Source of the DNA: Octopus bimaculoides
Lineage: Eukaryota
Length of the DNA stretch: 64,000 nt
Assembly: GCF_001194135.2 (NCBI RefSeq)
Contig: NC_068983.1
Coordinates: 134,563,383-134,627,382, forward strand
Reading direction: 5' to 3'
The notes beneath the pieces are model-generated. The model ran no database searches. It saw nothing but the letters and a program-made list of their open reading frames with translations, and had not been told where the DNA came from. Positions 23,471 to 56,801 of the stretch are shown here, one piece after another (the first letter of the stretch is position 1; each line of letters begins with the position of its first letter). A program made the position numbers and the translations under genes.

Positions 23471-25120
23471 ATTATCATTATTATTATTATTATATGAAAA
23501 CTCACAGCTTATTTTGCTGGGTATGATGGAAAGTGTCAGCTGTCCACAGCCAGCAGACTAAGGTGGCACTTGTTTACTGGTCATGCTTCAAGAAGCCTAC
23601 GAAGAATTCTTGCAGTTCCAAGCAATGCTGATTTTTGTAGGTGTTCTACCTTCACACTTGCACCGATCTTTTTCAGCCATGTTGGTTGTTGAGTGCTGAT
23701 ACTTCCAAGTCTGCTCTCTTCATTGACCACAACCTTCGTATTTCCCACTTTAAATCGTCGTAGTTGCTTATTTTTTCTTCTTCTTTCACATTGATCCTGT
23801 TGTCACCAGGGCATGTTATATCGATTTTCATACATGTTCTTTCTTTTTTATTCACCACAACAGTGTCTGGTTTCCGATGTCTGGTCAGGGGATTGCACTG
23901 GATCATTACATCCCACAAGATTTTGCAGTTCTCATTTTTGTTGACTCCTTCTGGGATTTGCTCATACCATATCTTTGTTCTTTGTTCTTGTAGTCTGTGA
24001 TTTCCACAGAGCTTCCAGTGGATCATTTTTCCACATTGTCGTGGTGTTGTTTGTACTCGCGTTGTGCCCCTCTCACCATACATTCTGTATTTGTCGCTAT
24101 CTGTAGTGTTGTCAATTCTGCTCTTCATATAATTGGTCCTTAACATTTGTTCCTGATCTGTGCATATGAGTGCTTCTGTCTCTATCTTCAGGTCACTCCT
24201 CGTCCATAGCCACCAGTCGTCTGTATCTGTCTTGGCATTCACATCTCTTGCAAACTGACCATACATTTTTTCCTTCCATGCTTTTTTCTTTTTTTGTTGT
24301 TGTTTATTTCTTGTTTAAATTTTTCTTTAGTTACACAATTTTCAGTTTTGATGATGCAAGCCTTCTTTGTGTGTTTCAACTGTGGTTCCATGTTTTCCTC
24401 TACTTCAATACAGTCCTGGCAACTGATCAAACCTCTCCCACCCTTTCTTCTGGACAAGTAGAGCCTATCAGTGTTACTCTTAGGGTGGAAGGCTCCATGT
24501 ACTGTCAATATTTTTCTGTTCTTGCTATCCATTTTCTTCATTTCTCTCTTTTGCCATTTTATAATTCCTGCTCCATACCAAAGTGATGCTATTGCCCACA
24601 TATTGACTGCTTGAATTTTATTCCATCCAGTCAATTTTGAGAGTGACACCAACCGCAGTCTTTGGAAATACTTCATCTTCAGTTGCTCTTTCATTTCCTT
24701 TTCCATTATCTCGTTGAACTCTAGTACACCAAGGTATTTGTATCCTTCTTTTTCAATTTGTTTAATCAGGTCTCTTTTCAGTAATTCTATCCCTGCTAGA
24801 AACTCTACCATGCCTCTTTTTATGTAAATTATTCTGCACTTCTTGAGTTCAAATCCCATTCTAATATCAGTACTAAATCAATGGACCGTGTTCACCAAGG
24901 AACTCACTTGTGTCTCATCTTTGCCATACAGTTTCAAATCATCCAAGAAGTGGAGGTGGTTGATTGTTTGGATTTTCCTTTAGTTGGTACCCCAGATTAA
25001 TTTTCCTGAGTACCAAGGTCAGGGGTATCATGCAGAGAACAAAAAGCAACAGAGATAGGCTGTCACCCTGGGAAATCCCTCTTCTGATACCCAGGGTGCC
25101 CAAGCTTTTTCTGTAAGATA
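23471..25120 (-). mobile_element. 5'-truncated, decayed R4/Dong-type non-LTR retrotransposon (RT plus restriction-like endonuclease) with (TAA)n 3' end
   Basis: RRGISQGDSLS, HFLDDLKLY, RLYLSRRKGGRGL, and KPDTVVV..IDITCPGD..KEEEKISNYDDL (PD-D-K endonuclease); ends at attattattatta on plus. Confidence 0.88.
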
Positions 25121-33707: not shown

Positions 33708-34180
33708 CATCATCGTTTAACGTCCGCTTTCCATGCTAGCATGGGTTGGACGATTTGACCGAGGACTGGTGAACCAGGTCGCTACACCAGGCTCCAATCT
33801 GATTTGGCAGAGTTTCTACAGCTGGATGCCCTTACTAACGCCAACCACTCAGAGAGTGTAGTGGGTGCTTTTACGTGCAACCGGCATGAAGGCCAATCAG
33901 GCAGTACTGGTAATGGCCACACTTGAAATGGTTTATTTTATGTGCCACCTGCACAGGAGCCAGTCCAGTGGCACTGGTAACGATCTCGCTCGAATGTCTT
34001 TTCATGTGCCAGGAAGGCAACGTTGGTAACGATCACACTCAAATGGTGCTATTTACATGCCACCGGCACAGAAGCCAGACAGCTGCTCTGGCAACGATCA
34101 CGCTCGGACGGTGCTTTTAGTGCTTCACTGGTACAGGTGCCATCACGATTTCGTTTTTGCTTGCCCCAACAGGTCTTCGC
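33708..34180 (-). mobile_element. Young RTE 3' UTR copy, minus orientation
   Basis: catcatcgtttaacgtccgctttccatgctagcatgggttgg is the reverse complement of the tail; includes hairpin modules. Confidence 0.85.
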
Positions 34181-40446: not shown

Positions 40447-40883
40447 NNNNNNNNNNNNNNNNNNNNNNNNNNNNNNNNNNNNNNNNNNNNNNNNNNNNNN
40501 NNNNNNNNNNNNNNNNNNNNNNNNNNNNNNNNNNNNNNNNNNNNNNNNNNNNNNNNNNNNNNNNNNNNNNNNNNNNNNNNNNNNNNNNNNNNNNNNNNNN
40601 NNNNNNNNNNNNNNNNNNNNNNNNNNNNNNNNNNNNNNNNNNNNNNNNNNNNNNNNNNNNNNNNNNNNNNNNNNNNNNNNNNNNNNNNNNNNNNNNNNNN
40701 NNNNNNNNNNNNNNNNNNNNNNNNNNNNNNNNNNNNNNNNNNNNNNNNNNNNNNNNNNNNNNNNNNNNNNNNNNNNNNNNNNNNNNNNNNNNNNNNNNNN
40801 NNNNNNNNNNNNNNNNNNNNNNNNNNNNNNNNNNNNNNNNNNNNNNNNNNNNNNNNNNNNNNNNNNNNNNNNNNNNNNNNNNN
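40447..40883. other. Assembly gap (437 N) inside a (TG)n tract in the last PTDSS1 intron
   Basis: Direct reading. Confidence 0.98.
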
Positions 40884-48536: not shown

Positions 48537-48977
48537 CTGAAATTGAATATAAAAATTTTACAAAATATAACCTATACATTCTTGTATGAAGTAAGAGTGT
48601 GAGGAGAAGAGTCAGGAAAAATGGAGAAAGCAGAGTTATTCACTTTGTATAAGGTGAACAACGGCAGTTAGATTTGAACTTATAAACACAGTCAATAAAC
48701 CAGCATCTTAATTTCCCAACCACTATGCATATGTGTATATACATTTATTTCAGCTAAAGGGATTCCTTCAACTTTGGTTGAGAATTCACTTAAGAGTAAG
48801 TCAATACTAAATTGAAATCTCTACTGCTCTGTATTAACTTATGGGGAACATTTAGGCTTGAGATAATATCAAATTTATAGCTGATTGTCCAAGACAGTGC
48901 AGTATTATTCACAACAAATTTTTGACAACACTAATTTATGCAGATGACTCATACTAGCATGGAACATGGACATTAAA

Positions 48978-49260
48978 TCATCATCATTTAATACCCGCTT
49001 TCTATGCTAATATGGGTTGGACAGTTTGATTGAGGACTAGCAAGCAGGGAGGCTGCACCAGGCTCGAATCTGATCTGGCAAGGTTTCTACAGCTGGATGC
49101 CATTCCTAAAGCCAACCACTCTGAGAGTGTAGTAGGTGCTTTTTACGTGCCACCAGCATGGGAGCCAGTCAGGCAGCACTGGATCAATCATACTCGAATG
49201 ATGCTTTTTACATGCCACCAGCATGGGAGCCAATCAGACAGCACTGGCATCGACCACGTT
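48978..49260 (-). mobile_element. RTE 3' UTR copy, minus orientation
   Basis: catcatcatttaatacccgctttctatgcta...gtttctacagctggatgcc. Confidence 0.8.
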
Positions 49261-49619
49261 GATTATGACAATACACCCCGCCATTCTTTCCTAATCTTTC
49301 CCAACCATGCATCTTCCATTAGCAATATAGACAAGCATTTACCAAGCTTTCATTGATTCCATGAACAGACACCACAAAAGTATCTGCTAATAGGGCTATA
49401 TCAATCTTGTCTCTCTCAACAGAAAGAAAACACAAATACTACTCGTATTAAGAAAACATCATTGCAACCCTACCTTAACACACAGCACACAATTAGAACC
49501 CTCACAATTGCACCAAATGTTGAGCTTCACTAAAATCAAGAATCTATCTTGGCAAGCATATCCTTAACGAAGCTTGGACTATATTCTAACAACTGACTCT
49601 TCTCTTCAAGGGTCAGAAG

Positions 49620-50700
49620 CATTTCATCAGTTAAGATCCATTGTCCATGCTTGCATGGGTTGGGCAGGTTGATCAGGGCTGGCAGGCTGGAAGGCTGCAC
49701 CAGACCCCAGTCTGATTTGGCATGGTTTCTATGGCTGGATGCTGTTCCTAATGCCAACCACTTGGAGACTGTAACAGTTGCTTTTATGTGCCACTGACAC
49801 GGGTGCCTTTTGTGTAACACCAGTACCTGCCATGACTGTGATTTTACTTGGCTTGTCGTGGCCTTTGCCAGTACCGCCTGACTGGCCTTCGTAGGATTTT
49901 TGAGCGAGATCATTGCCAGTGCCCCTGGACTGGCTCTTGTGCGGGTGGCACATAAAATACACCATTTTGAGCGTGGCCGTTGCCAGTACCGCCTGACTGG
50001 CCTTTGTGCAGGTGACACGTAAAAGCACCCACTACACTCTCTGAGTGGTTGGCGTTAGGAAGGGCATCCAGCTGTAGAAACTCTGCCAAATCAGATTGGA
50101 GCCTGGTGTTGCCATCCGGTTTCACCAGTCCTCAGTCAAATCGTCCAACCCATGCTAGCATGGAAAGCAGACGTTAAACAATGATGATGATGATGATGGG
50201 TCTTCTCAAGCATGATATAATGTCAAAGGTCTTGGTCATTCGTCATTGCCTCCATGAAGCCCAAAGTTTGAAGATCATACTTTATCACCTTGTCCCATGT
50301 CTTCCTGGGTCTACCTCTACCACAGGTTCCCTCCACAATTTGAGATTGGTACTTCTTTACACAGCTGTCCTCATCCCAACAGTTTCCAACAATTATTGGA
50401 CACTCCACAAAGGTTAGGTAGGGGCTACAATAGAGTATTGCTCACACATCTGGAAAGATGTTGCTGCTGTTACACAGATACCCTAGGCTACATTTAATAA
50501 AGGGTTATAAAGCCACTCACAAGCACACTATAGTTCCTTCTCTCTGATCCATGGAGTTGGCTGAGCTCACCTCCAACAAGGCATACATGTCTCCTATCAG
50601 TCTTATATCTACCCACCTCACCACAAGCAATGCACTAAACACCACTTCCAGTCCTCCTTAATGTGAACACTGGCCTTCTGAAACTTCCTTTCTTCTCATG
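49620..50700. mobile_element. Nested RTE copies: young plus-strand 3' UTR (about 49860-50198) inserted into an older minus-strand copy
   Basis: Flanks cttgtcg and ggtcttctc rejoin to cttgtcgggtcttctc, matching the reverse complement of the family 3' junction (cf. gagaagacccggcaag at about 2240); ORF 50223..50408 is an RTE C-terminus. Confidence 0.8.
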
Positions 50701-51363
50701 TCTTTCTTGCAATTGTTGACATACAATGGTTTAAGAAGAATATTAAGGTCAATCAATCTTACTGATCAAGGAAGGATGGCAAAGATCATGGGAACAGTCC
50801 AGATTCAGCAAATTAAAAAAAATATATGTATAGTAAATAATAGCAGAAAAGTAGACAGAAGGTGCTTGAAGTATAGGCAACTTGAATCATCTAACTGACT
50901 ACCTCTACCTTAACTAGAAGCTTTACAATAATGAAGTCAATTTGACTATCATTTCTCCCATTATAATTAGGAGGTAAATATAATTCTACATTAGCTTTAC
51001 TAAGTTTCTGTGTGGAACAATAGAAATAATTAACCACTAATGTTTCATTTCTCAGTTACAGCCATTTCACTCCACTTATATCTAATGATCCTGAGAAATA
51101 CATGTATGTCTTATTTTCAATCCTTCAATCTGTTGCCTTAAGCTGATGTAAGAAAGCAATGTCAATCATTCACTCAAATCAAATGCAATACATGACTTGT
51201 ACAACTTTTATTAACTCCAGAAAGGTGAAAAGCAAAGAACAACACACTAACAAGGTCTAAACTTAAAATGTAAGAGATACATAAGAAAAATACTGCAAGT
51301 CATTAAGCCTGTTACTACCATTTCTTTGACAACATATATGAAAATGTTACAAATACAACTTAC

Positions 51364-51445
51364 CTGCCATATAACAACTAAAATACCTACAGCCAACACT
51401 CTCATGTAGGAGGAATTGGGATCAAGCCATCGCACATGAGTCCAG
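51364..51445 (-). CDS. PTDSS1: PTDSS1 exon (WTHVRWLDPNSSYMRVLAVGILVVIWQ)
   Basis: Acceptor ttttttcag, donor gtaagt; 82 nt; corresponds to [27 protein letters not shown]. Confidence 0.94.
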
Positions 51446-51487
51446 CTGAAAAAAAACAGAATAAATATAAGTATACTGAGAAAAATT

Positions 51488-51535
51488 TATAGGAAAGTGG
51501 TTATACACCATTAGGTGTACACCCACTTTCCTATA
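51488..51535. repeat. 22-bp-arm hairpin with 4-nt loop
   Basis: tataggaaagtggttatacacc-atta-ggtgtacacccactttcctata. Confidence 0.85.
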
Positions 51536-51543
51536 TTAAATTC

Positions 51544-52000
51544 TAAATAACAACGAAACGCTGACTCTGAACTATCAACACAACAATATTTATTTATGGT
51601 GGAAATAGGCATGGTTGCTGAGACGCCGGAATGTTGTTGTGAGCTGTCCCCAGAGTTGGAATGTTGGAGAGACAGTTTGACCTGACCACGCTCATGTGAG
51701 AGAGCTCTGTTGGACCTGTGTTACCTCTTCGCCGGCCGGCGAGAAGAGAGTGAAAAAAGCGGGAACGTTTAGATGTTGAATTCCACGCATGTGCATGGGA
51801 CTCTTCCTGTGTTCCTTCCGGAACTATTCCCTGCGGATGCATAGATGAAAACGCAGTAATGGCGACTGTATTTTGGCGCCAAATGACGTCACTACAAATT
51901 CAAGTAATGGCAATTTTTCAGTTTATCATTACATTAGAATGTAGAAATAGGCCATGTATCTGATAGACAAACTTGCTTTCACCAACACACTCCTATTGGT
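51544..52000 (-). promoter_or_regulatory. CpG-rich intronic island with clustered promoter-type motifs (CRE, E2F, YY1-like, ETS, CCAAT); identity unresolved
   Basis: 18 CpG in 51554-51889; TGACGTCA 51884-51891 abuts TTTGGCGCCAAA 51872-51883; AATGGCG 51858-51864; TTCCGGAA 51816-51823; CCAAT on minus 51995-51999. Confidence 0.5.
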
Positions 52001-52744
52001 GGGATATTTCTAAGCTGTGTCTTCCCTATTACAATAGCTTTTTCTTATTGATGATTTCAAATCATCTAAACTAACATTCTACTGTCTCACAATTATACAA
52101 ATATGTACACATATTTATGAAAGCTGTCTTCAGCTATATTTGGTGTGTTTTAACATTTGCATATTTTAGATGATGCTTGCTGCAGATTAAATTATGACTG
52201 GTAAAACTGTTATATAATACCAAATTACTGGCCTTCATAATTGAGAAATAAACCCAACTTTGAGCAATATTTAACTGAGTGCATGCCTCACAAAAATACT
52301 TCCCTTATAATGTGGGGTAACCATGTACCTCCTGTATAGCAAGACACCTGTCCTTGTCTCTCTATCATATTTTAGCCTATCAGCACCTGGTATAAAGGTA
52401 CCTCTCCCACCTCCTAATACAACCCCACCATTTAGTCATGGAGGATTCCACTTTCCTGTTCTTTTCTTGTCTTACAACTTACTTGGCAACCAGTGGAACC
52501 AAAAAGAAAGAGAAAAGCACCCAGTATACACTGGAGCTTGGTGCAGCCCTGTGGCATGCTGGGTCTTGTTAAACCATGCAACCTATATCAGCATGGAAAA
52601 CAGACATTAAAGTGACCATCTAGCTTGAGGGTTGTGCAGTAATTAAAATGACAATGGAAAGATGTTTAAAGCATTTGTCACAAAACTGTCAATAGATGTA
52701 GACTTTCAGTATATATATATATATATATAATCAGGTAAACTTAC

Positions 52745-54307: not shown

Positions 54308-54432
54308 ATGTTAGGAAGGGCATCCAGCTATAAAAAACCCTGCCAAAACAGAAACAGAAGTCTGGTGCAGGCTCCTGCTAAACCATCCAATCCATGCTAG
54401 CATGGAAGGTGGATGTTAAACGATGATGATGT
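54308..54432 (+). mobile_element. Short RTE 3'-tail copy
   Basis: gttaggaagggcatccagcta...gcatggaaggtggatgttaaacgatgatgatg. Confidence 0.8.
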
Positions 54433-56773: not shown

Positions 56774-56801
56774 AAGAGAGAGAAAGAGAGANNNNNNNNN
56801 N

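Follow-up and report, generated by a model that had tools for sequence, protein, structure and literature searches.

A CpG-rich patch in a PTDSS1 intron of Octopus bimaculoides is probably recently inserted, lineage-specific mobile DNA

An intron of the Octopus bimaculoides gene PTDSS1 harbors a short CpG-rich patch with promoter-like motifs, an open reading frame, predicted RNA stems and a polyadenylation signal, which raises the question whether it is a regulatory or genic element in its own right or a recent arrival of mobile DNA. The initial annotation, made from a stretch of 64,000 nucleotides of contig NC_068983.1 (hereafter the window, to whose first letter all positions refer), described the patch as a self-contained CpG island and offered three readings of it, namely a young solo LTR, a nested mini-gene or structured non-coding RNA with its own promoter, and an internal PTDSS1 promoter that could be spliced to a downstream exon. 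Our analysis indicates that the observation is real and that its explanation is most likely an ordinary one, the patch being in all likelihood neither a conserved promoter nor a nested gene nor an RNA gene.

Genomic locus alignment showed that the window is 100% identical to the O. bimaculoides PTDSS1 locus, the gene lying on the minus strand. The exons were first placed by tblastn with a PTDSS1 query, which was used as a lead only, and their concatenated translation is 98% identical to Octopus PTDSS1 in a database search. The 90% cluster of PTDSS1 has members from O. bimaculoides, O. vulgaris, O. sinensis, Argonauta hians and Acanthosepion (Sepia) pharaonis, and five genomic PTDSS1 loci from these species were compared, among them L001 (O. 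vulgaris), L002 (O. bimaculoides) and L003 (O. sinensis). The annotated O. bimaculoides protein is full length and agrees with every exon in the window. The CpG-rich patch lies within an intron of 1.3 kb, between the following two exons:

52806-52747, minus strand: PTDSS1 exon DIHSTTGKIRRAVLQFTPS, upstream of the host intron
51447-51364, minus strand: PTDSS1 exon SWTHVRWLDPNSSYMRVLAVGILVVIWQ, directly downstream of the insert defined below

Elsewhere in the window, assembly gaps (N runs) are present at 40447-40883, 11852-11861 and 56792-56801, the largest of which (40447-40883) is flanked by a (CA)n/(TG)n microsatellite and located just upstream of the last PTDSS1 exon (40385-40185). Degenerate transposon reading frames were recognized by eye downstream of PTDSS1, one similar to Tc1/mariner transposases (14575-14973, plus strand) and two overlapping ones similar to reverse transcriptases (23673-24859, minus strand).

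The extent of the unit follows from comparison with the two congeners. The intron of O. vulgaris and O. sinensis aligns with that of O. bimaculoides at ~90-94% on both sides of the patch, and window positions 51488-51895 have no counterpart there; in either species one flank directly follows the other, with an overlap of 5 nt. At the level of single bases, the empty site reads ...GCCATTACTTCAATTTTTCTCAGTATAC... and the filled site of O. bimaculoides ...ACTTGAATTT-(408 bp)-AATTTTTCTCAG..., which defines the following features:

51488-51895, minus strand: inserted unit of 408 bp, absent from O. vulgaris (L001) and O. sinensis (L003), in which its flanks are contiguous
51896-51900, minus strand: one copy of the AATTT target, on the upstream side of the insert; the empty sites in O. 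vulgaris and O. sinensis (CTTCAATTTTTCTC) have this target once, O. bimaculoides twice
51483-51487, minus strand: the other copy of the AATTT target, on the downstream side, 36-40 nt before the exon acceptor (51448/51447)

A target-site duplication of 4-5 bp, AATT or AATTT, is thus found at both junctions in O. bimaculoides, and since AATTT is duplicated, the boundaries of the insert can be shifted by as much as 5 nt; on the assumption of a 4-bp duplication, the insert starts with TGTAG at 51896 and its 3' end is CTATA. The unit had originally been delimited as 51544-51895, flanked by a direct repeat aaattc, and these limits give way to 51488-51895 in the light of the empty sites in the two sister species. 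In particular, the aaattc at 51538-51543 lies inside the unit as a further copy of that hexamer and marks no boundary, the 3' boundary shifts 56 nt past the earlier one, and the hairpin at 51488-51535 falls inside the unit, because it is the empty sites that set its ends. The internal copy (GAATTT in the minus sense) would also fit a two-step origin, in which the hairpin was inserted first and a 351-bp unit later, a scenario less parsimonious than a single event. The CCAAT box that had been counted as part of a promoter (51995-51999) is located outside the insert, in old intron common to all three Octopus species. The segment labelled a 'self-contained CpG island' thus mixes inserted with ancestral sequence, and it misses the 3' hairpin.

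The same intron has received several independent insertions across Octopus species, since O. vulgaris and O. sinensis carry inserts of their own there, one of ~337 bp in O. vulgaris (L001 43311-43647, equivalent to window 52301-52317) and a larger one of ~630 bp in O. sinensis (L003 47013-47643, at the junction of window 52533/52528). The next PTDSS1 intron contains an O. bimaculoides-specific insert of 1546 bp (49234-50779) with a 3-nt overlap of the flanks in O. vulgaris, which comprises units of a dispersed repeat of ~170 bp, a 160-aa ORF (49536-50018, minus strand) and a CpG observed/expected ratio (o/e) of 0.26.

The contrast in CpG content noticed at the outset was borne out by counting. 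The segment 51544-51895 holds 18 CpG (o/e 0.92, GC 0.47), and the full insert of 408 bp likewise holds 18 (o/e 0.86, GC 0.456). The o/e of the window is 0.195, the patch being its densest 350-bp CpG stretch, while the values for the 1.56 kb of intron immediately flanking the insert and for the 32.8 kb of blocks shared with O. vulgaris are 0.02 and 0.13, respectively. By the customary definition, a CpG island spans 200 bp or more with a CpG o/e no lower than 0.6 and a GC content no lower than 0.5. The insert (408 bp, o/e 0.86) has the required CpG density; its GC of 0.456 falls short, and its absence from two congeners does not suit a conserved promoter. Other O. bimaculoides-specific inserts in PTDSS1 are likewise richer in CpG, such as a 473-bp insert at 33708-34180, absent in O. 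vulgaris, which has an o/e of 0.71 and is one of multiple copies of a SINE-like family whose tail is (GAT)n. Older copies of this family occur at 48977-49260 of the window and in several places in L001 and L003; the young copy at 33708-34180 keeps its CGs (..GCGGACGTTAAACGATGAT), and in an old shared copy near position 54432 they have decayed to TG (..GGTGGATGTTAAACGATGATG).

In O. bimaculoides, broadly expressed genes carry 5mC along their bodies, whereas transposons have virtually none (PMC9476566). The resemblance of the insert to a CpG island is probably due to its recent arrival in a gene body that is methylated and depleted of CpG. Its source DNA would have been unmethylated in the germ line, its residence in the methylated PTDSS1 gene body would have been too short for CpG loss, and youth alone would then lend it the appearance of a CpG island, until decay sets in.

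The sequence motifs on which a promoter had been proposed, together with the polyadenylation signal, are located as follows:

51872-51891, palindromic, no strand assigned: a CRE-like palindrome, TGACGTCA, directly next to an E2F-like one, TTTGGCGCCAAA, the pair lying 5-24 nt inside the 5' edge of the insert; motif match
51858-51866, minus strand: GTCGCCATT with a GCCAT core, YY1-like; motif match only
51589-51594, minus strand: AATAAA, followed by the GT-rich tract TATTGTTGTGTTGATAG

All three factor motifs were recovered where they had been reported. The CRE-like octamer (51884-51891) occurs twice in the window versus 0.22 expected occurrences, the adjoining E2F-like palindrome (51872-51883) is unique versus 0.04 expected, and the YY1-like site stands as a motif match. 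Palindromes are enriched in the insert in general, with six palindromic 8-mers versus 1.6 expected (P about 0.008). As for AATAAA, its position is correct and its informative value is nil, because the window contains 186 copies, 21 of them on the sense strand within the PTDSS1 span. The only other copy of TGACGTCA in the window is located at 1117-1124, well past the 3' end of PTDSS1, and the surrounding region (1000-3000) has a GC content of 0.45-0.49 and CpG patches at ~2051 and ~2476; it may represent a real promoter of a neighbouring gene. Exact matches to the 20-mer spanning the CRE- and E2F-like sites were found in 14 JGI metagenome contigs, 11 of which are GC-rich (~60-69% GC), and none in an exact scan of IMG/VR viral contigs. 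The metagenome matches share only 20-26 nt, the string (AG)TGACGTCATTTGGCGCCAAA(AT), as in L013 328-353 and L014 1522-1547, and these contigs were dismissed as relatives of the insert, being chance or unrelated matches with no similarity beyond that length; the string itself may belong to a repeat, or to a gene segment conserved within one group of bacteria.

The 82-codon ORF of the initial annotation is present at 51594-51842 and is part of a longer frame:

51597-51896, minus strand: open frame of 100 codons from the 5' edge of the insert to a TAA (51596-51594), containing the ORF 51842-51594

The deduced 82-aa sequence had no word-sharing candidate among 5.8 billion protein clusters, and the concatenated segments of all six frames yielded nothing in the same clusters at E values up to 10. 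A Pfam scan of the 100-codon frame gave no match, and exhaustive phmmer comparison with 1.84 billion representatives returned three weak matches, none of them to a protein bearing a reverse transcriptase (RT). Two of these are bacterial repeat proteins (FG-GAP/DUF5122 and DUF7507, respectively) without RT or TE domain and the third has no Pfam family; all three were discarded, the score of the best match being spread over repeated stretches and hence spurious. The proposed phase-0 splice donor GAG/gtaaca is in phase 0 only in the frame of a 34-codon ORF (51796-51692) and not in that of the 82-codon ORF, and joining it to the VAELN exon would need one exon to be skipped. An internal PTDSS1 promoter feeding that exon finds no backing, the element being absent from O. 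vulgaris and O. sinensis and lacking a homologue in any frame as well as an Rfam match.

RNA folding was considered for the whole unit and for two of its parts:

51752-51840, minus strand: stretch of 89 nt forming a closed three-way structure in the predicted fold, ending in T6 (51753-51758)
51488-51535, minus strand: terminal hairpin with 22-nt arms and a 4-nt loop (-32 kcal/mol, z -7.9 on both strands)

The stems named earlier do appear in the predicted fold of the insert. The whole unit folds better than shuffled sequences on both strands (z -4.3 and -4.7), and since the two strands are about equally strong, its folding mostly reflects DNA palindromes. The 89-nt stretch folds better in the minus sense (51840-51752; z -3.2, versus -1.2 in the plus sense), with a minimum free energy structure that makes up 41% of the ensemble; it has no Rfam match and no homologues from which covariation could be read. 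The terminal hairpin is almost perfect, broken by a single G.A mismatch and including one G.U wobble pair, which exists in the minus-sense RNA only, and no other copy of it was found in the cephalopod loci searched. Rfam at gathering thresholds gave no family match in the whole window. At E values up to 10, Rfam 15 applied to 51200-52300 left the core without match, and the terminal hairpin drew generic matches to plant miRNA-like precursors (best E 0.08), far below gathering. ARAGORN found no tRNA or tmRNA, and Rfam no tRNA, 5S or 7SL head on the insert. The proposal of a nested mini-gene or structured non-coding RNA likewise finds no support, in view of the absence of the unit from O. vulgaris and O. 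sinensis and the lack of both a homologue in any frame and an Rfam family.

That the unit is a young, lineage-specific insertion of mobile DNA into the O. bimaculoides PTDSS1 intron appears quite probable; the grounds for this reading are the empty site, the duplication and the CpG state. Integration would have used a staggered cut, as in transposition, and would postdate the separation from the O. vulgaris lineage 13-33 My ago, a period in which many TE families have been active (PMC13282606). The core of the first of the original proposals, that of a young inserted repeat, is favoured by the lineage-specific insertion, the target-site duplication and the undecayed CpG. The 5-bp microhomology at the junctions is also the expected trace of a deletion in the ancestor of O. 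vulgaris and O. sinensis, and such an event is central to a very improbable alternative, by which an ancestral functional element kept unmethylated (an intronic CpG-island promoter, or a nested or non-coding RNA gene) was lost there through microhomology-mediated deletion. The two species are sisters and a single deletion would be enough, the 5-bp repeat would be able to mediate it, and CpG retention, palindromic factor sites and the 89-nt core with its T6 would suit a protected promoter or small RNA gene; yet Argonauta has neither the insert nor any similarity to it, no Rfam family or protein homologue was found, the GC of 0.46 is under the usual CpG-island criterion, the CCAAT box counted as a promoter part is outside the unit, and other lineage-specific TE inserts in PTDSS1 share the CpG excess. 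In the comparison with the Argonauta and Sepia loci no part of the insert matches, and the terminal 100 nt of the Argonauta intron give a weak alignment that crosses the site without it (TTTTATTTTCAGGATACT versus TTTTTCTCAGTATACT, P about 0.05). Insertion is favoured over deletion by this outgroup comparison, itself weak evidence, by the extreme CpG contrast and by the like CpG excess of other O. bimaculoides-specific inserts. Self-BLAST and fuzzy searches of the 64-kb window, and of the O. vulgaris, O. sinensis, Argonauta and Sepia loci (~290 kb of cephalopod sequence), detected no second copy of the insert. The lack of another copy in this DNA would also be in line with the improbable case of a non-transposon fragment duplicated from another octopus locus, e.g., the CpG-rich promoter of a housekeeping or cell-cycle gene together with the first exon and the beginning of intron 1, and patched into a double-strand break. 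The succession of CRE, E2F and YY1 core, with a GAG/GTAACA donor ~150 nt further on, and a CpG o/e typical of an unmethylated promoter would agree with such a source, whereas transposition would more typically leave the clean 4-5 bp duplication, such a source does not account for the 48-nt terminal hairpin, and no annotated or predicted protein starts with either candidate first-exon peptide in a database that includes the O. bimaculoides, O. sinensis and O. vulgaris proteomes.

Within the preferred reading of inserted mobile DNA, a solo LTR of a Ty3/gypsy-type or similar element is the best-fitting class, which we assign tentatively. It is the best single fit because the minus-sense order of features, with the palindromes, AATAAA and the GT-rich tract ~300 nt further on, and then ~100 nt ending in the hairpin, would fit a U3-R-U5 layout. 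Such an element would begin with the 5' TGTAG and be bordered by the 4-bp AATT duplication; the CRE/E2F/YY1-like sites would lie in U3, AATAAA and the GT-rich tract in R, and the hairpin at the end of U5, so that the ORF, the stems and the polyadenylation signal would be features of the element and not of the host gene. The duplicated AATT(T), single in O. vulgaris and O. sinensis, is within the LTR range of 4-6 bp. Of the young solo LTR proposed at the outset, the young lineage-specific insertion is retained and the LTR class is a best fit only, given that the insert ends with TGTAG and CTATA, i.e., with a 3' TA and not CA, that its terminal inverted repeat is only 4/5, and that it has no clear TATA box. 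Among ~11,000 recent insertions in O. vulgaris, LTR elements account for 153, and 'unclassified SINEs' of ~390 bp dominate (PMC13282606). More in keeping with the prevalence of LINE and SINE-like insertions in recent Octopus activity (PMC13282606) would be a 5'-truncated non-LTR retrotransposon, or a non-autonomous partner with a 3' stem-loop, inserted by target-primed reverse transcription, the frame then being the end of ORF2 and the hairpin the 3' recognition structure; we regard this reading as unlikely, although it is the main rival of the solo LTR. The frame is open from the very 5' edge to the TAA at 51596-51594, with a chance of about 1% per frame, the 3'-terminal hairpin has its G.U pair only in the minus sense, and this combination of a 5'-edge open frame with a 3' hairpin is more typical of a 5'-truncated non-LTR element than of an LTR, the short duplication being compatible as well. 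On the other hand, no polyA or microsatellite tail is present, the hairpin being followed directly by the duplicated target; phmmer against the 1.84 billion representatives found no RT-bearing protein and only spurious bacterial FG-GAP repeats, no frame had a word-sharing match in the 5.8 billion clusters, and two exact palindromic factor sites at the 5' edge would be unexpected inside a coding tail. Its SINE variant is further weakened by the internal T6, which argues against Pol III drive, and by the lack of a tRNA, 5S or 7SL head. The unit might instead be mobile DNA with a compact promoter and a structured RNA of ~85 nt ending in U6 (LTR- or TRIMp3-like, an undescribed small-RNA module), or else a small RNA gene or an antisense/alternative promoter that arose recently in PTDSS1 of O. 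bimaculoides alone and is kept unmethylated, either of which we hold to be very doubtful.

A number of other classes were considered and set aside. A SINE is disfavoured by the lack of a Pol III head (ARAGORN; Rfam at E up to 10) and by the T6 inside the unit at 51753-51758, and a MITE or other TIR DNA transposon by the ends GTAGTGACG... and ...CTTTCCTATA, which are not inverted repeats. None of the five boundary registers gives the TC...CTRR of a Helitron on either strand, there are no internal terminal direct repeats as in a TRIM, and no CUGANGA...GAAA core of a hammerhead or Penelope-type ribozyme was seen by eye or matched in Rfam. The reading of TGGCGCC as a primer-binding site (PBS) was rejected as a match of just 7 nt inside a perfect palindrome. 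A NUMT is unlikely at a GC of 0.46 and with no tRNA or rRNA found, the GC content of octopus mitochondrial DNA being well below this value.

The mobile-element reading would not require any effect of the insert on PTDSS1, because the insert is upstream of the polypyrimidine tract and the likely branch point and the annotated protein is full length; both the polypyrimidine tract and a CTTAT branch-point candidate appear to lie downstream of the insert. Inserted ~40 nt from a splice acceptor in sense orientation, the unit can be used to ask how octopus genes tolerate insertions, and its presence in O. bimaculoides and absence from O. vulgaris and O. sinensis make it a clean marker by which the first can be told from the other two. 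For genome scans the locus is a caution, since a fresh octopus insertion can mimic a CpG island with promoter motifs because gene-body methylation strips CpG from the introns of broadly expressed genes while transposons stay unmethylated. If the element family is active, the termini of the insert and its hairpin would help to define it.

Set against known systems, the insert resembles a solo LTR of the Ty3/gypsy type (or BEL/Pao) in its size of ~400 bp, its TG(TAG) start, its 4-5 bp duplication and its young, lineage-specific state, in the lack of long terminal inverted repeats, polyA tail and tRNA head, and in the same-sense arrangement of factor palindromes, AATAAA and GT-rich tract; it differs in its 3' TA and missing TATA box, in that no paired copy or gag-pol body occurs in the window and the ~290 kb of loci, and in the 48-nt hairpin at the very 3' end, which is not standard. 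In the eel pair UnaL2/UnaSINE1, a 'stringent' LINE and its SINE partner, a 3' stem-loop is recognized by the reverse transcriptase. The insert is similar to these in having a 3'-terminal stem-loop, a frame open to the 5' break and a short flanking duplication, but it carries no terminal repeat, A tail, RT-related homologue or Pol III head and does contain an internal T6. Compared by description only, it is close to the 'unclassified SINEs' and unknown low-copy families of O. vulgaris (PMC13282606) in size (mean ~390 bp), recent activity and absence of classifiable features, whereas it is unrelated in sequence to the abundant SINE-like family of the window (33708-34180, with its (GAT)n tail). 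TRIMp3 elements (Cassandra, Helenus, Ajax) are LTRs that bear a small-RNA-derived Pol III unit (PMC10886601); like them, the insert is LTR-sized, has a 4-5 bp duplication and includes a compact RNA-like segment which folds well and has a T run at its end, but it shows no tRNA or 5S similarity, internal direct repeats, PBS or PPT, and a Pol III reading of it would be purely structural. Finally, an o/e near 0.9 on a depleted background and the CRE, E2F and YY1-core motifs recall a CpG-island promoter of the vertebrate style, from which the insert departs in that it is not conserved even within the genus, has a GC content below 0.5 and probably owes its CpG excess to young age; and, in contrast to the vertebrate-style setting, CpG depletion in the octopus is specific to methylated gene bodies rather than genome-wide.
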